Assembly: GCA_950097015.1 (NCBI GenBank)
Contig: CATNEN010000029.1
Span: 8,060,001 to 8,124,000 of the forward strand
Source: Macrostomum hystrix
Lineage: Eukaryota; Animalia; Platyhelminthes
Reading direction: 5' to 3'
DNA: 64,000 bases
The notes under the pieces are model-generated. The model was not told where the DNA came from, ran no database searches, and saw only the letters and a program-made list of their open reading frames with translations. A program made the translations under genes and the position numbers. Shown here one piece after another: positions 800 through 26,300 of this stretch. Each line of letters starts with the position of its first letter. Position 1 is the first letter of the stretch.

Positions 800-2238
800 A
801 TCGAAGCCAGATAAACTGCCAGCCGATGTGCTTGCTGACGCTAGCGCCGGCTTTCGCCTGACTGTCACCTCCGTTGGCATTCCGGACGTCAAAACGCGGT
901 CCTGCCCAACAGGTGCCAACGCCAAGGCTGTTGATTCTGCTGCTGATGCCGCCTCTCTGCTGTCTTCCAGTAGTTCCTCTAAATCTGCTCCGGCGGACGC
1001 TGGCGGAAGCGGCATTGTCGGCGCCGGTCTGCTAGGCGCCGAGGAGGCCGAGCAGCTGCGACGCTGCACTTTTCGTAGAGCGTCTCCGCCGCCGCCTCTC
1101 CCGCTGCCGCTGCCTGCGTCTTCTTCGTCGTCCTCCTCCGCCTCCATGCTGGCCGCGGCTTCGTCGAATTCGCTGGCCAACATGCCGCTGACTACCTGGT
1201 GCCTGCCAGTTGAAGCTTTGTGCGACGGCCTCGTCAACTGTCCTGATGGCACGGACGAGCAGCCCGTGTGCCGACGGGACGGTGAGTGCTCTCTACGTTC
1301 TGTTGTGATCTACGCGCAGATTCGTATAGATAGATTTCAATCACCCCCCTGAATTGCCAGTCTCTCTGATGTCGCGCCTGCTCTCACTCGGTGTCGCCGC
1401 CTCGGTAGCCATGGGCGTCGGCGCTGTAGCCCTCGGCATGGGCTGCGTTCTCGGCCTCGCCTGCTGCTGCTATCGGGCGTTGAGTTCCGAGCCTCCGCCG
1501 GCCGCAACAACCACAGCATCGGCGACGCCTAATGCGGCTATGACAACACTTCATTCGCCTGGTCAGCATCAGCTTCTGCTCTATCAGCAGCAGCAGCAGC
1601 AGCACCGTCTGATAATGGCCTCCCGTCAGAGTCCGGCGGCCTCCGTGCAGCGGCCTCCAAGTCGCCAGACGCCGCCGCCACCACATTCAAGCATCGGCGC
1701 AGACTATGCCGCGTACGGCCACAATTCGTCTCATTATTCGCTAGCCGATGGCAGCAGCGGCGGTGGCAGGTCCTACCAGAAGTCCAGCTTAGCAGTTAGC
1801 GCTTATCCCCAGCAGCAGCAGCAGCAGCGAGCCTACAACAGCACTGAGCAACTATTTGGCTATGGCCAGCTTCATCAACAGCAGATTCATCAGAATCCTT
1901 ACAGTCAGCAGCAGCAGCACAATCTCTACAATCATCACCACCATCAGCAGCAGCAGCAGCAGCAGCAGGGTCAGTATCGACTGGGCCAGCACCATCCGCA
2001 GCCGGCCAGCCATCACGGCGGTTACGGCGGCGCCGGGGGTAGTCGCACTCCGACCAGCTCTCGTAGCGCCAAGAGCGGCCGCAGCGGCCGCAGTTCCTAC
2101 GGGCCTGGCCATCAGATTCGGCCTGTACCGCCGCCGTCCAGGGCCGACTCGGAGACTGGCGGACATCAGCTGCTACAGCAACAGCAGCCAGCTTCCTCCG
2201 GATCTCGCGATAGAATAGTCTATCCAGTGCAACTGTGA
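800..2238 (+). CDS. 3' exons of a single-pass membrane protein with an LDL-receptor class A repeat and Q/H/S-rich cytoplasmic tail (5'-partial)
   Basis: Exons 800-1281 and 1361-2238. The GTGAGT...TTGCCAG intron is phase-1 compatible. WCLPVEALCDGLVNCPDGTDEQPVC is an LDLa motif, followed by a hydrophobic segment ending CCCYR. Acceptor CTCCCAG at 793-799; start exon not seen. Confidence 0.75.
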
Positions 2239-4847: not shown

Positions 4848-7800
4848 TCAAAGCGGAACGTGCGAGAACAGGTAGGACACACTCTCGCCATTGTGCGTCC
4901 GCCTGATCGCCTCGCCCAGCATCATGCTGACGTCGATGCACTGAATCTTGGAACAATTGCGCATGTTGTAATCCTGCGGTATCGTATTAGTGACAACCAC
5001 AGCTTCGAAGTTACTGCGATTAATCCGATCGATGGCCGCGCCGCTGAGGATGCCGTGCACGCAGATTGCGTAGACTCGAGCGGCTCCGGCCTCTTGAAGC
5101 TTCTCAGCGGCGTGACAGATTGTGCCGCAGGTGTCGGCCATGTCGTCAACTAGGATGGCCGCTTTGCCTTTTACATCGCCAACTAGGACCATGCGGTCAA
5201 CTTCGTTGGCCTTTTTGCGCTCCTTGTGGATCAGGGCGAACTCAACATTGAGCCGATCCGCTATGGAGGTGACTCGCTTGGCACCGCCGGCATCCGGGCT
5301 AACAATGACCGAGTCCTGCCAGCCGGCAACATTCTCCATGATCCACTTGATCACAGCCGGCTCGGCGTAGAGATTGTCAACTGGGATGTCGAAGAAGCCC
5401 TGCAGAGTGCGAAGATAGTAAGGATACATTAGTCTAGCGCATTAGTCTAAAGTATAGCCATATACTCGTATTTCTAACTGCCCCTTATCCGCCCGCGTTT
5501 AGCCCAAACCTAGCAGAAAACGGAGAGGTCTAAAATTTGAAATCAGCCCAGGATATTTCTGTCCTTAAGCAACATTCGAATTCGAATTTGTGTAGTGGCC
5601 ATCGAGTCCATGGACTGAACATATATACACAGTCTTTGTATGCGACCAAATGACCCCTGGCAGTACATCTGGCGCAACTAGGTAGGTTTTTTATAATTCT
5701 ATCTACCTATATTTTATACGAGGTTTACTGCGTGAAAAGAAATAAATTTACGCCCATTAACAGAAGAAAGACCAGGCTATTCCCCCCTGGGAATATTTCA
5801 AATATCCACTGCCTACTTAATAGTAGAACAATACGCTATATAAATGAACTGCTAATAGTAATCATTTATGATAGCTCCCAAACTGAATGACCGATTTTCG
5901 TCGGTCACCTTTTGGATCAAGATTTTCGTATAAACATCTATGGCGATTCCATATTGGTTCAAAATGGATAAAACTATATAAAATACGATTGCTTATTTAA
6001 TCGTTAAAAATTGTACTATTCTGAGCCGGGAATGTGTTGTCTATGGTAATTTTTGATGAGATTATTTGACAAAACTAGGATATTATATCATATAATCTCC
6101 TCGAAATAAGGAGCATAATAAGGAACATTGAAGTGAACTTTGAATTCTGCTTTTACGTTTTGCCATCACTGACTCACTAGCTGCTTCGTGACTGTATCTT
6201 CGTGAGAAATTTATTTTTTTGTCTATGGTCGGAATCAAATGGTCTAAACCTATGTCTATCAATCAGATGGGATGCCCACGAAAAATAAGCAATCGAATTT
6301 CATATATGATAAACGCCGTTTAATTCATCATAGTCTATGGTTAGAATATCCTCGGCTGCAATCAATGGTCCTCGGCTCGCTACGCTTGCCTCGAGACCAT
6401 TAAACGCAGCCTCGGACATTCTAGCCACAGAATGTGAATTAAACGGCGTTTATTATTTACTTAATCAATAATATAGTCAGTTAATAAATATATAGTCAAC
6501 GATTAGCCGACATGGTTAATGATGAAACTCCATGAGCAGAAAATTTATGCCTATATTGGTGGTTTTTGCCACCAGACCCCACGACGAGAATCGTTGAATA
6601 TCTCGATTATCGACTATGACGATGTTTTGTGATTCTGGAAGTTGTTTCATCGGATAGAGCGAAAAATTCTAGCCGTGTTTTAGAATTTCATGGCGATTGG
6701 TTGAATAGAAAAATGTGGGAATTTGAAAAACCCCTGTGCTCTTTCTACTGTTACAAGGCGAAGGCACAACTCAGACATTATGTCACTTGCTACAAGATTA
6801 ATCTAGTCTCCTAAATATCACACAATGCAATGCTAGCGATCTATTCGTAATTCAAAGAAGGATTCGAAACTTTCCTGAATCTGCGAGGCGTGCAAGTCCA
6901 TTGTGATGATGTGATCGGCGCCAGCCACGCTGAGCATATTCGCCACCAGCTTAGCCGAGATTGGGGCCCGCGATTTGTCCTTCTTATCCTGTCTGGCATA
7001 GGGGAAACAGGGCATCACAGCGGTGACGCGAGCAGCGGAAGCAGTCTTGCAGGCGCTGATCATGATTAGTAACTCCATGAGCATGTCATTGACTTCACCA
7101 GAGCCAGTCTGTATGATGTAAACATCCTCGCCACGGACTGATTCGCCGATTTCAACACTGCATTTTATATTAAACAGGAAAAGTTCACTGCTTTCTACTT
7201 GAATGAAAGAACAATTTTTTTAAAACAAATACATTGATTTTTTGAAGAATAAAGAGAGGTTAATGAGAAGGGTAAGAAAATTTACAGAAGAAGCTTATGA
7301 AAATGTGAAGAAAAAACACAGTTCAGGGCAAAATAAATTAAAATTCTTTAAAAAGAAATTCTTAGTCATATCAAGATTTTAGATTGAAAATATATCAAAT
7401 GTACTTGAAGTAGCAATCAAGATTTTATGAACAATTCTAGTCATTAGTATACTCCCCTATGGGAAAAGGTTGACAATCCCCAGATGACATCTGGAGCACT
7501 TTTGGGACTCTTCTAAAGCACAGCCCCACAGTGTGCAAGCAGCTAAAGGAGCTAAAGTGCTCCTTTCTTAATCTTTCTCAATTCTAAAGTACATGTCTGC
7601 ATCTGCAGGTTTTCAACATAAATTTCAATAGAGCTATACTATAATGTACAACTTTTGGAACATAGATAATAAGCAAGATTTATTATTATATATTAACAAT
7701 AACTCACAGACATTTTTAGGCAACAGGCAACATTTGCATGCTTTATGGCCCAAATTTTTAGGCAGAGCTTATTCCCACAGTCCCATGCCGATAATTTCAA

Positions 7801-17697: not shown

Positions 17698-18930
17698 GAT
17701 TACATCCTGTTCCGTGTGATAATATCCTGTTCCGTGTGATAATATCCTGTTCCGTGTGATAATATCCTGTTCCGTGTGATAATATCCTGTTCCGTGTGAT
17801 AATATCATGTTCCGTGTGATAGTATCCTGTTCCGTGTGATAATACCCTGTTCCGTGTGATAATATCCTGTTCCGTGTGATAATATCCTGTTCCGTGTGAT
17901 TATATCCTGTTCCGTGTGATTATATCCTGTTCCGTGTGATAATATCCTGTTCCGTGTGATAATATCCTGTTCCGTGTGATAATATCCTGTTCCGTGTGAT
18001 AATATCCTGTTCCGTGTGATAATATCCTGTTCTGTGTGATAATATCCTGTTCTGTGTGATAATATCCTTTTCCGTGTGATAATATCCTGTTCCGTGTGAT
18101 AATATCCTGTTCCGTGTGATAATATCTTGTTCCGTGTGATAATATCCTGTTCCGTGTGATAATATCCTGTTCCGTGTGATAATATCCTGTTCTGTGTGAT
18201 AATATCCTTTTCCGTGTGATAATATCCTGTTCCGTGTGATAATATCCTGTTCCGTGTGATAATATCCTGTTCCGTGTGATAATATCCTGTTCCGTGTGAT
18301 TATATCCTGTTCCGTGTGATAATATCCTGTTCCGTGTGATAATATCCTGTTCTGTGTGATAATATCCTGTTCCGTGTGATAACATCCTGTTCCGTGTGAT
18401 AATACCCTGTTCCGTGTGATAATACCCTGTTCTGTGTGATAATATCCTGTTCCGTGTGATAACGCCCTGTTCCGTGTCAGTACATCCTGTTCCGTGTCAG
18501 TACATCCTGTTCCGTGTCAGTACATCCTGTTCCGTGTCAGTACATCCTGTTCCGTGTCAGTACATCCTGTTCCGTGTCAGTACATCCTGTTCCGTGTCAG
18601 TACATCCTGTTCCGTGTCAGTACATCCTGTTCCGTGTCAGTACATCCTGTTCCGTGTCAGTACATCCTGTTCCGTGTCAGTACATCCTGTTCCGTGTCAG
18701 TACATCCTGTTCCGTGTCAGTACATCCTGTTCCGTGTCAGTACATCCTGTTCCGTGTCAGTACATCCTGTTCCGTGTCAGTACATCCTGTTCCGTGTCAG
18801 TACATCCTGTTCCGTGTCAGTACATCCTGTTCCGTGTCAGTACATCCTGTTCCGTGTCAGTACATCCTGTTCCGTGTCAGTACATCCTGTTCCGTGTCAG
18901 TACATCCTGTTCCGTGTCAGTACATCCTGT
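17698..18930. repeat. 20-bp tandem array with two domains (ATCCTGTTCCGTGTGATAAT then ATCCTGTTCCGTGTCAGTAC)
   Basis: About 60 units; the variant switches near 18470. Confidence 0.95.
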
Positions 18931-19843
18931 TACGTGTAATAGTATACTGTTATTCGTGATGTTAAGTTTGAGTTTTCTTTGTCAGACTTTAATACTTCTG
19001 ATAAGAAAGTGGTGATAATCTCAAGGAGCAAGATAACAGGCCGTTCAAATTAGGTGTTTATTTCTATCGTATAGTGTTTTTCCTTTCAGTTCAATTAAAG
19101 ACGGACAACAGCCTGCTGACCTTCTGTAGGCCAGCAGAACCATTATTCTCCGCTAGTCTCAATCGCACAATTTGATTGATGCTCAGCAGGAAAAGCAACA
19201 ATTTTTTTGCTTAGTTTATTTTCCCAAATGAGTTCTGTTGACTGGGAATATTTGACTTGGCAATCAATCTCAATGAACCAGCCGCATTATTGACACTACT
19301 CAAAGATCTGAACTAATGTTGGGCGACGGCAATATAAATCACGGAACACAGCTTTTTGTCGGGTCCGAAAGTGTCAAACTACGCATTTCTAGCTTAGTGT
19401 CTATTTAATAATTTATGCTCTGGGCCGGTTCCAAAGCACTTAATGCCAGCCAAAGAATAGGATGGTTTTGAGACAACTGGGTGGCCCATAAGATGATTTG
19501 GAAGAAATTAAGAGAAGACAAATCAACCATCCGCTGGGACCTGCCCGCCGCGATAAGAATTGGCAACCCAGATTAGGCGAGAATAGAGTTTTGGAGCTTT
19601 AAGGAAAACTAATGACCGTTGTCAGGCTGAAGGAGTTGATGGAGGATGTGACCAGCGGCCAGCCAATCAAGTCGTCAGCACCGCCCCACCCTTAGCCTTC
19701 ATTTAAATAGCAAGCAACTTGCTTTCTGAGCAGGACTCGCTTATCCGCCCATCTCCATTATAGTCGCTGCAAAGCAGACCTGTTTCCTGGATTTCACAGC
19801 TCATTTGTGTAGCTCTAATTTATCCCCACAGAGTGAAATCCCC

Positions 19844-20732: not shown

Positions 20733-21195
20733 ATGGACGATCGATGTCTGATTGAACAGGCGGAGACAAGATTGCTTGAATTGCAGTTGGATACAACAGT
20801 AAAACACCAACTTAGCCACCCATTGTTAGCTTGATAGAGCACAGCGACAACAAGCCAGCTAGCCCAATGAATAATCGACAATTGTTATCTATGAAATATA
20901 CAGTTCCTAAACTGAATGACATAATGACATTTGTGTGAGCACAGTAGAATTCTGTGATACATCAGTGTGTACGCTGCAATGGTTTGCAGACCAAACTGCT
21001 ACAATTGATTACGAGTATTCTATGGCTTTAACCGTTGTCGAGGCGCTGGATCATTTGTAAATGAGGTCGAAAAGTAGTATGCTGCCAAATATGTCTACAT
21101 GACATCCTAATATATTTAACCAATCCCCATGAAAATGTATGATTGAAACTAGTGTTAGACGCATTGTAAAATGCGAATTAGTCTCTGACTTTTGG

Positions 21196-23130
21196 CCATA
21201 GACATCCATTTACTGCACGCTTTTTTATTTTCATCGGAAAAATCGAAGGACTGCCATAGACATACGAGTAAATGTAGGACCTGAGCGCAGTTAGAAGACG
21301 ACTTCCAGCGATACCATGGCTTCGTCAGCTAAGCGTATTTATTACGTTGACTATAAGAAACTGCCTGGAGAAGCCATATCTGGAATGTCATCTTCACAGA
21401 TTGATATTATCCTACAACAGCAAACCGAAGAGCGCTTTGCTGAAAAACAAATCGAGCAACCTGCAAATGTGGACGAGGACTTTGTGCTGCCGGATGATAT
21501 TGACATTGACGGCATGTTCGACAGTTTGCCGAGCGTTGAAGATCTAGAGAAATCGATAGACGAGCTAGAAGAGAGTGTGACGAGTGCCGGTACCAGACGT
21601 CAGACTGATACGTACGTGAAAAAGCTGGTGGACTTCATAGCTTCGACACCGTCGTTGAATATTGACTTGATGACGGCTGAGCCGGAGAAGGTCATTCGTG
21701 TCCTCCGATTATTCTATGGCACGGCAAGTAAGACTGACGGCGGATATTATTCGCCAGCATCGCTAATCTGCATGCGTGCAGCTATTTTCCGCTACATGAT
21801 GCGAGCCAGGCAGCTAAACATCATTGAGGGCGATGCTTTCTATTCTGCAAACGCGACATTGAAGGCAATGGCGAGGAAGTTTATTTCCGATGGCGGTCGC
21901 GCGAAGCATTTCCAAGCTATTGAAGTGGAAGACATGGAGAAGTTATCTCGATACTTTGACAGACAGTCTCCGACGGCTTTGCTGCACGAGATTTATTACA
22001 GCCTGATTTACTACTTAGGAAATCGCGGTAGAGAATGGCTAAGAGGTCTGAAGGAAGACAGCTTCGTTTTCGAGACGATGTCTGATGGGAAGCGTGCAGT
22101 GCGCCTGTTGGCTGGTAAAGTGAAGAATGTAGGCAACACACTCGGTCGGGACGCATGTGACGATGTAAAGGAGTCGCTGATGATCGAGACTGCTGAAAAG
22201 TGTCCTGTACAAGCTCTCTTGATGTATCTAGAGAAACGGCGCGAGTCTTTGCCATCCACCTCAACCTCAACGAGTACTGCACCGTTTTTTATGAAACCCA
22301 AAACAACCAGGTGGAAGAACTCTAACTGGTATTTCGCGTCACAAGCGATTGGTGTTAATACCCTAGCAACCATGATGTCCAAATTGTCTGAGGCTGCCGG
22401 TTTGAGCAAGCGTTACATGGCCCATTGCATACGCCCTACCGTCATCAAGGAGTTGTCTGGTGCTGGGTACTCGAATGCTGACATCTGTAAAGTGACTGGC
22501 CACAAGCAAGTGAAGACAGTAGAACGATATCGGCAATTCGGAAGCAGACGAACGTCCGAGATGCGGGCTATGTGCAACTCATTGCACTCATCGCTTCATG
22601 AAGCCAATGCTTCGAACGGCCCCGATCGATTGAAGATGTGTCAGCCAGCGGAGCACGATGTTTCGAACAGTGGTAGTTCGACCGAGCCTCGGCATGTTGT
22701 CTTCAATCTCAACTTTAATGGAAACGTGAGTGGGTGCACCTTTAATTTAACGAAATGATTGCAGCTGCACAATAGCAAGTGATTTGACATCAATAAGATC
22801 TTAAAATTACGAGCTATTTCGATACTGACGAAAGTACAAGTAATTAATGTGTTATATCGTTGTCCTGTTGAAAAATATACGCACCGATTGTTCTTTTTGA
22901 GTTTGGACCATAGACGTCCATTTACTGCACGCTTTTTGTATTGCTTGACTATACGATCTTACTATAGACATGGTCATTTACTGCACGCTTGAGCGTTGTA
23001 CAATGCAGCACACGGACTTTAGTATCCGATGAAACAACTTATATCCACTCTCACACACAGTGAGTGTGGATATAGAAGGGATTCATTTTTGTTTTCAGAT
23101 GCGACTCGAATTTCTATAGTCCCGTGCATC
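21196..23130 (+). mobile_element. Crypton-like element (minimal extent; true termini uncertain)
   Basis: YR ORF flanked by 30-bp direct repeats (21196-21225 and 22908-22937), a degenerate third copy (22962-22990) and a hairpin at 23004-23128. Confidence 0.7.
21316..22758 (+). CDS. Tyrosine recombinase of a Crypton-type DNA transposon (DUF3504-like)
   Basis: Intronless 480-aa ORF with YR catalytic motifs in order: GNRGRE (R), KVKN (K), AHCIR (HxxR), TGHK (H), ERY (Y). Confidence 0.85.
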   Translation: MASSAKRIYYVDYKKLPGEAISGMSSSQIDIILQQQTEERFAEKQIEQPANVDEDFVLPDDIDIDGMFDSLPSVEDLEKSIDELEESVTSAGTRRQTDTYVKKLVDFIASTPSLNIDLMTAEPEKVIRVLRLFYGTASKTDGGYYSPASLICMRAAIFRYMMRARQLNIIEGDAFYSANATLKAMARKFISDGGRAKHFQAIEVEDMEKLSRYFDRQSPTALLHEIYYSLIYYLGNRGREWLRGLKEDSFVFETMSDGKRAVRLLAGKVKNVGNTLGRDACDDVKESLMIETAEKCPVQALLMYLEKRRESLPSTSTSTSTAPFFMKPKTTRWKNSNWYFASQAIGVNTLATMMSKLSEAAGLSKRYMAHCIRPTVIKELSGAGYSNADICKVTGHKQVKTVERYRQFGSRRTSEMRAMCNSLHSSLHEANASNGPDRLKMCQPAEHDVSNSGSSTEPRHVVFNLNFNGNVSGCTFNLTK

Positions 23131-23328
23131 TATTATAGCACAACTGTATCAACAATTGTGCCGTCAGCGACAGAAATGCATGGAATTAGTGCCTTTGTTA
23201 TATTTGATATAGACTGAAGCTTTTTATTTCTTACAAGCAGGAATCACGCAAAAAGTAAAAAAAGAGGCACTAAATACAACGCATTAATGAAACAGGATAA
23301 GTATGTTCTAATTGTCACTAAAAATGCT

Positions 23329-26300
23329 TCAAGATCCAAAGTCCAGGTGGTCTTCAACGTTAAACTGCGCCCCGCCGCTGCCACTGCAGCCACCGCCGCC
23401 GAAGGCGCCATCGGCCTCGCCGTCGCCGTCGCCATTTAAATCTCGTCCGGCGCCCTCCGCCGCCTCGTAGTGCCGCTCCTGCGGCTCCAGATCCTCGCCG
23501 TATTGCAGGGCCATGTCAACCTGGGAGCGAAGAGCAAGGGAACGGATTAGTATAAAAGTACACCGGGAAGAAGACAAGCAGATTTGCCTTAATATATCTA
23601 TCTCTTAAATCTACAGCAATCCCACTGAGTTGCACAGCAATGCCACTGAATAGCACAGCAATGCCACTGAGTTGCACAGCAATGCCACTGAATAACACAG
23701 CAATGCAGAGCACATAGCTACTCACCTGCAGCAGAGCATCAGCCACGCACTGATCGTCGGCAATATCGAAGGGCACAAATCGCACCAGACTGTAGCTGTC
23801 AATCAGTTCTATAACTGCCGCATTCAGGCCAGCGTACCGAGCCGACAGCGGGCCGGAGTGAAGCTCCAACAGGTGGGCCAGATCCGGCTCCAGGTAGTCG
23901 GCTAAGCGACGCTTCTGAGCACGGCTGAGCAGATCCAGCTTAGTTAATAGATTAATGTGAGGCAGTTCCAGGTTGACCATGGCAGAGAGGGCGGCAAACA
24001 GGCCAGAGACAAGTTTGCACGGATCCACTAGAAACTGCGAGTCCAACACAAACACTGAGCATAGGCGAAATTCGCGAGACTGCAGATAGTCAACAATCTG
24101 TCGCATCACAGGCAGGTGGCAGTAAAGTTCAATCTGGCCGGGACAGTCCAGCAGGAGGTAGTCGTCTTCGGCCACGGCATCCAGAGCGGTGTCCAGCCAG
24201 TCCAGGTTGTGGGCCAGGTAGTCCATGCAGAACACCAGGCCGCCGTTGGGGCCAAACGCCAGCTCGGTGTCTTCCATTGCGTCGCGCACCTGCGTTTCAA
24301 AAATTGGAATTGCGAATAATAGAAACGACAACTTCACCCAGTTTGGCAACCTTCCCTTCCTAGCTCATTGGGGAAACGTGAGAGAAACTAGCTCATTGTG
24401 GAAATGTGAGAGAGACTAGCTCATTGGGGAAATGTGAGAGAGACTAGCTCATTGTGGAAATGTGAGAGAGACTAGCTCATTGGTTAAATGTGAGAGAGAC
24501 TAGCTCATTGGTGAAATGTGAGAGAGACTAGCTCATTGTGGAAATGTGAGAGAGACTAGCTCATTGGTTAAATGTGAGAAAGACTAGCTCATTGGTGAAA
24601 TGTGAGAGAGACTAGCTCATTGGTGAAATGTGAGAGAGACTAGCTCATTGGTGAAATGTGAGAGAGACTAGCTCATTGGTGAAATGTGAGAGAGACTAGC
24701 TCATTGGTGAAATGTGAGAGAGACTAGCTCATTGGTTAAATGTGAGAGAGACTAGCTCATTGTGGAAATGTGAGAGAGACTAGCTCATTGGTGAAATGTG
24801 AGAGAGACTAGCTCATTGTGGAAATGTGAGAGAGACTAGCTCATTGGTTAAATGTGAGAGAGACTAGCTCATTGGTGAAATGTGAGAGAGACTAGCTCAT
24901 TGGTGAAATGTGAGAGAGACTAGCTCATTGGTGAAATGTGAGAGAGACTAGCTCATTGGTGAAATGTGAGAGAGACTAGCTCATTGGTGAAATGTGAGAG
25001 AAACTAGCTCATTGGTGAAATGTGAGAGAGACTAGCTCATTGTGGAAATGTGAGAGAGACTAGCTCATTGGTGAAATGTGAGAGAGACTAGCTCATTGGT
25101 GAAATGTGAGAGAGACTAGCTCATTGGTGAAATGTGAGAGAGACTAGCTCATTGGTGAAATGTGAGAGAGACTAGCTCATTGGTGAAATGTGAGAGAGAC
25201 TAGCTCATTGTGGAAATGTGAGAGAGACTAGCTCATTGGTTAAATGTGAGAGAGACTAGCTCATTGGTTAAATGTGAGAGAGACTAGCTCATTGTGGAAA
25301 TGTGAGAGAGACTAGCTCATTGGTGAAATGTGAGAGAGACTAGCTCATTGGTGAAATGTGAGAGAGACTAGCTCATTGGTGAAATGTGAGAGAGACTAGC
25401 TCATTGGTGAAATGTGAGAGAGACTAGCTCATTGTGGAAATGTGAGAGAGACTAGCTCATTGGTTAAATGTGAGAGAGACTAGCTCATTGGTTAAATGTG
25501 AGAGAGACTAGCTCATTGGTGAAATGTGAGAGAGACTAGCTCATTGTGGAAATGTGAGAGAGACTAGCTCATTGGTGAAATGTGAAAGAGACTAGCTCAT
25601 TGTGGAAATGTGAGAGAGACTAGCTCATTGTGGAAATGTGTGAGAGACTAGTTCATTGGTGAAATGTGAGAGAGACTAGCTCATTGTGGAAATGTGAGAG
25701 AGACTAGCTCATTGGTTAAATGTGAGAGAGACTAGCTCATTGGTGAAATGTGAGAGAGACTAGCTCATTGGTGAAATGTGTGAGAGACTAGCTCATTGGT
25801 GAAATGTGAGAGAGACTAGCTCATTGGTTAAATGTGAGAGAGACTAGCTCATTGGTGAAATGTGAGAGAGACTAGCTCATTGTGGAAATGTGAGAGAGAC
25901 TAGCTCATTGGTTAAATGTGAGAGAGACTAGCTCATTGGTGAAATGTGAGAGAGACTAGCTCATTGGTGAAATGTGAGAGAGACTAGCTCATTGGTGAAA
26001 TGTGAGAGAGACTAGCTCATTGGTGAAATGTGAGAGAGACTAGCTCATTGGTGAAATGTGAGAGAGACTAGCTCATTGGTGAAATGTGAGAGAGACTAGC
26101 TCATTGGTGAAATGTGAGAGAGACTAGCTCATTGGTTAAATGTGAGAGAGACTAGCTCATTGGTGAAATGTGAGAGAGACTAGCTCATTGGTGAAATGTG
26201 AGAGAGACTAGCTCATTGGTGAAATGTGAGAGAGACTAGCTCATTGTGGAAATGTGAGAGAGACTAGCTCATTGGTTAAATGTGAGAGAGACTAGCTCAT

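Follow-up and report, generated by a model that had tools for sequence, protein, structure and literature searches.

A stretch of 64,000 nucleotides from the flatworm Macrostomum hystrix (GenBank assembly GCA_950097015.1, contig CATNEN010000029.1, positions 8,060,001 to 8,124,000 of the forward strand; hereafter the window, in which coordinates are given unless stated otherwise) carries an intact tyrosine recombinase gene with long direct repeats on either side of it. Are these repeats the sites at which the recombinase would act, or do they lie inside a larger mobile element that ends elsewhere? The initial annotation of the window favored the first answer and suggested a self-excising cassette of 1712 bp. 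Our analysis makes it very likely that the window holds one copy of a young, low-copy DNA transposon of the CryptonA type, with two-part motifs near its ends and with the ends themselves at (A)ATG. The annotation is therefore partly supported: it was right in kind, as to an intact and young Crypton-type recombinase element with directly repeated sites, and wrong in anatomy. Of all classes of DNA transposons in eukaryotes, Cryptons are to our knowledge the one least understood, and we know of no description of the DNA that an animal Crypton enzyme recognizes.

Copies of the element were sought in the window's own 220-Mb assembly, whose contigs are abbreviated here as C1, C3, C5, C10, C25, C34, C38, and so on. 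Loci cut from the assembly carry L numbers (L034 is the C10 copy, L035 the C38 copy, L036 the C25 copy, and L052 the C34 copy). We call the window's Crypton family family A and a 348-bp nonautonomous family family B.

Direct repeats and the ends of the element

Repeat coordinates were obtained with a repeat finder and by direct reading of positions 20900 to 23300. Repeats 1 and 2 (see the table) form a pair of 40 nucleotides (nt) with 36/40 positions identical (90%) and 1712 bp from start to start, and a 16-nt core is present three times, at 21207, 22919, and 22975. Reading of the sequence also recovered the 30-bp direct repeats as they had first been described, 29/30 identical and placed 90 bp ahead of the start codon (21316) and 150 bp past the stop codon (22758), together with the degenerate third copy at 22962.

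Comparison with other copies moves the ends of the element outward from these repeats. All copies have 50 to 68 bp of common sequence outside the repeats, and those on C10, C38, and C25 share sequence with the window beyond both of them. Ten 3′ ends stop at ...GTTGTACAA, with agreement running to ...GAGCGTTGTACAA and divergence setting in within two bases beyond. At the other end, the copies on C10, C34, and C3 start with ATGTATGATTGAC, the window equivalent of which is 21135-21146; the C10 copy aligns from 21146 to 23005 and has an identical 12-nt start ahead of its hairpin. An (A)ATG stands at both termini of the window copy (21134-21137 and 23002-23005). A 32-nt pattern built from the two flanks of the window element with one ATG between them was found at C1:8151671-8151702 and C38:16546681-16546712 (29/32 positions each, with a single ATG), while the reversed control pattern gave 0 matches; by chance, a 32-mer with three or fewer mismatches would be expected about 3e-6 times in 4.4e8 positions. 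The C10 copy, in turn, interrupts a satellite; units of this satellite that carry no insertion read ...GTGAATGAGTG... and have a single ATG where the copy is inserted. Since copies extend beyond the repeats and since joined flanks with a single ATG occur elsewhere, these comparisons place the ends of the element at 21135 and 23005, at (A)ATG, 61 bp and 68 bp outside the 30-mers. Neither end is an inverted copy of the other, the 5′ hairpin described below is internal to one end, and there are neither long terminal repeats (LTRs) nor terminal inverted repeats (TIRs).

The two 32-nt look-alikes on C1 and C38 are identical to each other and may represent a short dispersed repeat or a preferred target. 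No empty allele of the window locus itself was found in the assembly, in which the 400-bp flanks are otherwise unique.

What remains of the proposal that the 30-bp repeats are themselves the recombination sites, so that a 1712-bp circle with the gene would be excised and one repeat left behind? The repeats are real, direct, nearly identical, and enclose the whole open reading frame (ORF); they are probably protein-binding motifs, between which occasional recombination is conceivable. Against this stand the common sequence outside the repeats in all copies and the empty-site look-alikes, which put the ends at the ATGs. Furthermore, no locus uniting a 5′ end, one repeat, and a 3′ end, which is what excision between the repeats would leave behind, was found in the assembly as far as our searches with each end reach; these searches, and the solo 3′ ends at L040, L041, and L043, gave only 5′-truncated fragments. 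The deletion derivatives on C25 and C5 have their breakpoints elsewhere than at the repeats. We consider this proposal very improbable. The annotation had named repeats that are merely internal, with ends far outside, as an outcome that would speak against it; internal they are, but the ends lie only 61 and 68 bp beyond the 30-mers, which is not far. It had likewise remarked that the repeats exceed the few-bp termini of Cryptons; their length of 30 to 40 bp is real, but the actual terminal repeat is (A)ATG, whose 3 to 4 bp are typical of Cryptons.

The recombinase and the other copies

The recombinase gene, as annotated, is an open frame for 480 amino acids (aa) with all catalytic residues in place (R239, K270, H370, R373, H396, and Y405). 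Pfam returned both DUF3504 (6.6e-9, 36.5 bits against a cutoff of 29.7) and Phage_integrase (2e-6) above their cutoffs, and a weak match to a QRICH1 domain. The best named relatives are hypothetical proteins of Macrostomum lignano at 34 to 45% identity; the three closest relatives of all (P0001 to P0003, 43 to 49% identical) are encoded by contigs of 1.5 to 1.9 kb. Among 14 relatives gathered by word search, R237-G-R239-E, K270, and H370-x-x-R373 are invariant, while H396 and Y405, which align to the catalytic His and Tyr of XerA, are kept in most but not all. A phmmer search with the single protein against PDB sequences gave no match, so profile and fold searches were needed. A profile of the relatives matches XerA over the HxxR...H...Y block (1e-5) and QRICH1 at 2e-3. 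The AlphaFold model (mean predicted local distance difference test score, 72.5) matches Cre over ~340 columns and both domains (E value, 3e-9; template modeling score of 0.70 to 0.73 normalized to Cre), at a sequence identity of only 12 to 13%; a QRICH1 chain was matched in the fold search as well. Confidence is low in an N-terminal tail of ~90 aa, which is acidic and partly helical, and in a C-terminal tail of ~50 aa. Based on the Pfam domains, the aligned catalytic residues, the profile match, and the modeled fold, the gene product is predicted to be a complete two-domain Cre-like tyrosine recombinase. Neither a second ORF nor a reverse transcriptase was found in the Crypton copy by ORF listing and Pfam. 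The R-H-R-Y tetrad, the single small unit, the terminal direct repeat that equals the target, and the several dispersed copies are all as in Cryptons.

Dispersed copies with the same ends lie on C10, C38, C25, and C34, with older ones (72 to 83% identity) on at least eight contigs. The fullest is the near-full C10 copy at 2019 bp, compared with ~1.87 kb in the window; the C38 copy aligns to 21162-22872, and the C25 copy is internally deleted, with 21146-21267 joined to 22472-22872. The youth claimed for the element holds up: between the window and C10 copies we counted 23 to 31 substitutions over ~1860 aligned bases (roughly 1.2 to 1.7%), 11 of them within the ORF. Among close copies, only that of the window retains an open frame, since the C10 ORF has an in-frame stop near codon 183 and the C38 ORF two 1-bp deletions. 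Relative to the C10 copy, the window copy is missing ~80 bp of hairpin sequence, an in-frame 36 bp from the acidic N-terminal region, 11 bp ahead of repeat 2, and a 19-bp stretch right after repeat 2 that holds a lone Box2 (one of the motif boxes described below).

These features invite a different reading, in which the recombinase is stationary and retained by the host, as in domestication, so that its frame is kept while the end signals of the transposon decay. The window ORF is the sole intact one among close copies, the missing hairpin, the missing 19-bp box, and the mutated Box1 of repeat 3 are peculiar to the window copy, and DUF3504 genes are known domesticated Cryptons (PMC3212892). 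However, the 11 ORF substitutions relative to the broken C10 copy, with a ratio of nonsynonymous to synonymous changes per site (pN/pS) near 1, are too recent to show retention. Domesticated DUF3504 genes such as ZMYM, QRICH1, and KCTD1 have lost the catalytic Tyr and the second Arg (PMC3212892), whereas the window gene keeps every catalytic residue, and it is no single-copy host gene: it belongs to a multicopy element and is ~99% identical to dead copies. Since loss of the palindrome is frequent in family B copies too, at least 12 of which start at consensus position 79, loss of the hairpin looks like ordinary decay. Retention by the host is accordingly, in our estimation, a far-fetched account of the locus. 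Least probable of all, and hardly to be entertained, is a fragment or relative of a DIRS/Ngaro-type tyrosine recombinase retrotransposon with split direct repeats, for although the arrangement of the repeats, with a single one toward the 5′ end and a pair toward the 3′ end, recalls the A1...B1-A2-B2 scheme of Ngaro and VIPER (PMC13465315), the full-length element has 2019 bp and one ORF with no reverse transcriptase, its ends are precisely defined by the empty-site look-alikes, its repeats measure 30 to 40 bp rather than hundreds, and its protein matches DUF3504, unlike DIRS/Ngaro recombinases (PMC3212892).

Two-part motif, 5′ hairpin, and the circle model

Within the transposon that we favor, the repeat resolves into a two-part motif, with Box1, CCATAGAC, followed by Box2, TTTAC/TTATC-n-GCAC. 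A full-length element contains about seven occurrences of this motif, namely an inverted pair that forms the hairpin, 1.5 copies after the hairpin, and 2.5 copies before the 3′ end (table). Box1 was seen 7 times in the window against 1.45 expected, a count reached in 0/100 shuffles, and TTTACNGCAC was seen 3 times against 0.47 expected, with 3/3 occurrences inside the Crypton copy and 3/3 on the + strand. The 5′ hairpin of the C10 copy is a palindrome of ~2 × 40 nt with a DNA fold of −45 kcal/mol (z-score, −11.6). It is also present in the C34 copy, half of it is present in the C25 and C38 copies, and a shorter form occurs in an older copy, L061. The layout of the motif is kept in older copies whose ORFs are only 74 to 82% identical and in family B. 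The C10 copy has a C at the position matching 22963, where the window has the T that gives repeat 3 its mutated Box1.

Features of the window element, motif positions in the C10 copy, and a family B copy
Feature	Position	Strand or orientation	Description and basis
Whole Crypton copy	21135..23005 (C29:8081135-8083005)	+	1871 bp with both ATGs, net insertion of 1868 bp; C10, C38, and C25 alignments and empty-site look-alikes
5′ ATG (AATG with 21134)	21135..21137	+	Short terminal direct repeat, presumed crossover site; ATG also before the 5′ end in C10, C34, and C3
5′ terminal TATGATTGA	21138..21149	+	Followed by a scar where ~80 bp of terminal hairpin is missing
Internal look-alike GCATTGTAAAATG of the 3′ terminus	21160..21172	+	Read by eye; candidate role; end point of the C34 mini-copy, starting point of the C38 copy
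Direct repeat 1	21186..21225	+	Box1 CCATAGAC at 21196, Box2 TTTACTGCAC at 21209; equivalent position in older 5′ ends L061 and L063
Extra Box1 CCATAGAC	21254..21261	+	No Box2 in direct orientation beside it
Tyrosine recombinase gene	21316..22758	+	480-aa open frame, no intron needed; Pfam, alignment, Cre-like model
Direct repeat 2	22898..22937	+	Box1 at 22908, Box2 at 22921; kept in older subfamilies
Direct repeat 3	22962..22990	+	Weaker copy; Box1 is mutated CTATAGAC instead of CCATAGAC; Box2 at 22977; nearly invariant in 10 copies
3′ terminus GAGCGTTGTACA + ATG	22991..23005	+	Similarity of 10 copies stops here; flank resumes right after ATG in look-alikes
Inverted Box2, degenerate Box1 beside it	C10 copy 26-35	inverted	Left hairpin arm (box scan)
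Box1+Box2	C10 copy 69-87	forward	Right hairpin arm
Box1+Box2	C10 copy 142-164	forward	Repeat 1
Lone Box1	C10 copy 200		Box scan
Box1+Box2	C10 copy 1903-1925		Repeat 2
Lone Box2	C10 copy 1935		Box scan
Box1+Box2	C10 copy 1976-2000		Repeat 3, 19 nt from element end
Family B copy	L074:1477-1824 (C15:1059515-1059862)		348 bp, ATG at both ends, 5′ hairpin of ~2 × 50 nt

A search with the center of the C10 hairpin led to family B (72 matches from 97 candidates, of which 40 were scored). It has at least 40 copies, many at 95 to 100% identity, and its hairpin has a 53-nt core in common with family A (87% identical) and several CCATAGAC and TTTACnGCAC boxes. Eleven copies start with (A)TGGTAGATT and end with ...TGTCAATG, an ATG precedes the 5′ end in 10/11, and the right flank of L070 corresponds to the L079 insertion site in its unfilled state and has one ATG. 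Judged from these termini, family B follows the same ATG rule as family A and fits the Goodwin model of Crypton transposition. Two loci (L068 and L039) contain head-to-tail joints of family B copies with a single common ATG (...TGTCA-ATG-GTAGATT...), as would be expected for the junction of a circle or if a circle had integrated at the end of a resident element.

The joints lie at 1275-1705 of the reverse complement of L068 (C38:8743808-8746860) and at 1760-1900 of L039 (C5:1328437-1331512); L039 also has one hairpin with 3′ ends on both sides in opposite orientation. Matches of 162 bp at 74% identity were considered as an autonomous partner of family B and rejected, since they belong to another repeat of >3.1 kb without family B ends. 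This repeat (L022 to L030; e.g., C38:10306583-10309744) is a different and very young element, present at 9 or more loci with 98 to 99.9% identity, and resembles the recombinase only in a 60-aa stretch (61% identical to residues 376 to 435).

How might such an element move? Under the Crypton model, the recombinase would join the two ends at the short (A)ATG and release a circle. The junction of 3′ end, ATG, and 5′ end on that circle, ...GTTGTACA-ATG-TATGATTGA..., would recombine with a target (A)ATG, and the inserted copy would thereby have ATG on both sides. On this reading the repeats of 30 to 40 bp are not crossover sites; their motifs may instead load several recombinase molecules at each end, with the outermost motif of the 3′ end and the inverted motif that comes first at the 5′ end facing each other across the junction ATG. 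On such a junction, repeat 3 would face the inverted left hairpin arm at a spacing of ~41 bp in family A and ~47 bp in family B. Visual inspection of the predicted junction for a 13-8-13 dyad like that of Cre showed only the short palindromes TACA-A-TGTA (family A) and CA-A-TG (family B), which are unconvincing. The window copy may supply the enzyme in trans while being itself a poorer substrate, because it has the sole close open ORF but has lost the hairpin, the 19-bp 3′ box, and one Box1 base. A more daring proposal, which we put forward tentatively and regard as rather doubtful, is that the two-part motif and the 5′ hairpin are cis-acting signals that form, with the intact enzyme, a system that still works and of which family B copies are recent substrates. 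If true, this would be the first defined enzyme-plus-site pair for an animal Crypton and would explain the head-to-tail pile-up of these elements.

Several points weigh against the transposon as we reconstruct it. The CryptonA placement comes from Pfam domains rather than from a phylogeny that includes reference Cryptons. The evidence for an empty site comes from a paralogous sequence of 32 nt rather than from an allele, and neither a circle nor an excision footprint nor a polymorphic empty allele of the locus was seen in the assembly. That the boxes may be recombinase-binding sites is a reading of sequence, and the facing motifs, ~41 to 47 bp apart, are spaced far more widely than in a Cre-type 13-8-13 core site; the boxes may therefore be accessory rather than core sites. 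A pN/pS of ~1.3 against the broken C10 and C38 copies is uninformative on selection because it is calculated on only 11 to 21 changes. Finally, the current activity of the family is uncertain, since there are only three near-full copies, two of which are broken.

Some rearranged copies have their joints within the hairpin or at the internal sequence that resembles the 3′ terminus. The C38 copy has its start at this look-alike, GCATTGTAAAATG; in place of the last 125 bp of the element it has a second 5′ end, which breaks off at the hairpin center (L035 6620-6690, C38:4239620-4239690), and the C25 copy starts at the hairpin center (L036 4640-4700, C25:3948640-3948700). In these two loci one copy ends and another begins exactly at the hairpin center, which could reflect breakage at the center of the palindrome or nested insertion. 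The C34 locus (L052, reverse complement 1501-1620; C34:5724129-5724258) holds a mini-copy of 119 bp that matches the C10 5′ end at 98% identity and stops right after GCATTGTAAAATG, the internal look-alike of the 3′ terminus GCGTTGTACAATG. The positions of these joints suggest that the hairpin center and the look-alike site may be points of breakage or recombination.

Known systems and the neighborhood of the element

Like animal CryptonA elements (PMC3212892), family A has a single DUF3504 tyrosine recombinase gene with no extra C-terminal domain and no TIRs or LTRs, is small and low in copy number, and has nonautonomous derivatives that outnumber the autonomous element. For animal Cryptons, Kojima and Jurka (2011, PMC3212892) report no terminal repeat whatsoever, whereas family A bears (A)ATG (3 to 4 bp) at its termini. 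It also has a long hairpin at the 5′ terminus and a subterminal motif that recurs several times, neither of which is reported for animal Cryptons (PMC3212892). Its host, moreover, is a flatworm, a phylum outside the CryptonA host list given there. A literature search returned nothing relevant on Cryptons with hairpins or subterminal repeats or on Cryptons in Macrostomum. The Goodwin model and terminal repeats of 4 to 6 bp are described in the same source (PMC3212892), and an active CryptonF in Chlamydomonas has a terminal motif that matches its target and excises cleanly (PMC9977147). As in fungal and algal CryptonF (CryptonF-1_cRei; PMC9977147), the terminal motif of family A equals the target motif and is single at the unfilled site, and head-to-tail or rearranged joints occur at it. 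CryptonF differs in its 4- to 6-bp motif (e.g., CACCG) and GCR1_C domain, as opposed to the (A)ATG and DUF3504-type protein described here.

With Cre/loxP and the integrases of the Tn916/Tn1549 type, the window enzyme would share a two-domain Cre-like fold and the expected R-K-H-R-H-Y chemistry, and, as with Tn916/Tn1549-type circular intermediates, the recombination site would re-form on the circle when the ends are joined. Unlike Cre/loxP, the predicted junction has no evident 13-8-13 core and its motifs lie 16 to 22 bp from the crossover, in addition to the 12 to 13% identity of the proteins. The placement of motif copies within ~150 bp of the ends, in fixed orientation and asymmetrically, resembles the subterminal arrays of cut-and-paste transposons and the arm-type sites of lambda Int, although the likeness is an analogy only; no separate arm-binding domain is recognizable in the recombinase. 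Taken with the intact enzyme and the young family B, the crossover repeat, hairpin, and motif make the Goodwin circle model and site recognition directly testable.

As a single locus, the element is an ordinary transposon insertion with no evident effect on neighboring genes. The GPN gene that had been annotated next to it is indeed there: the ORF at 23516-24349 on the − strand encodes a member of the GPN-loop GTPase family (ATP_bind_1, 1.5e-46). A similar short element lies on the − strand at 6010-6440, near a PRPS gene; its palindrome of ~2 × 40 nt (6425-6345) is followed by three copies of CCATAGAC in a span of 300 bp, and it ends in ...AGTACAAT. The region also contains tandem arrays: a 28-bp array of >18 units (24220-24995) extends into the 5′ portion of the GPN-family ORF region, a 21-bp array of 5 units lies at 23592-23717, and a periodic ORF made from a repeated unit of ~21 aa lies at 18494-19015.

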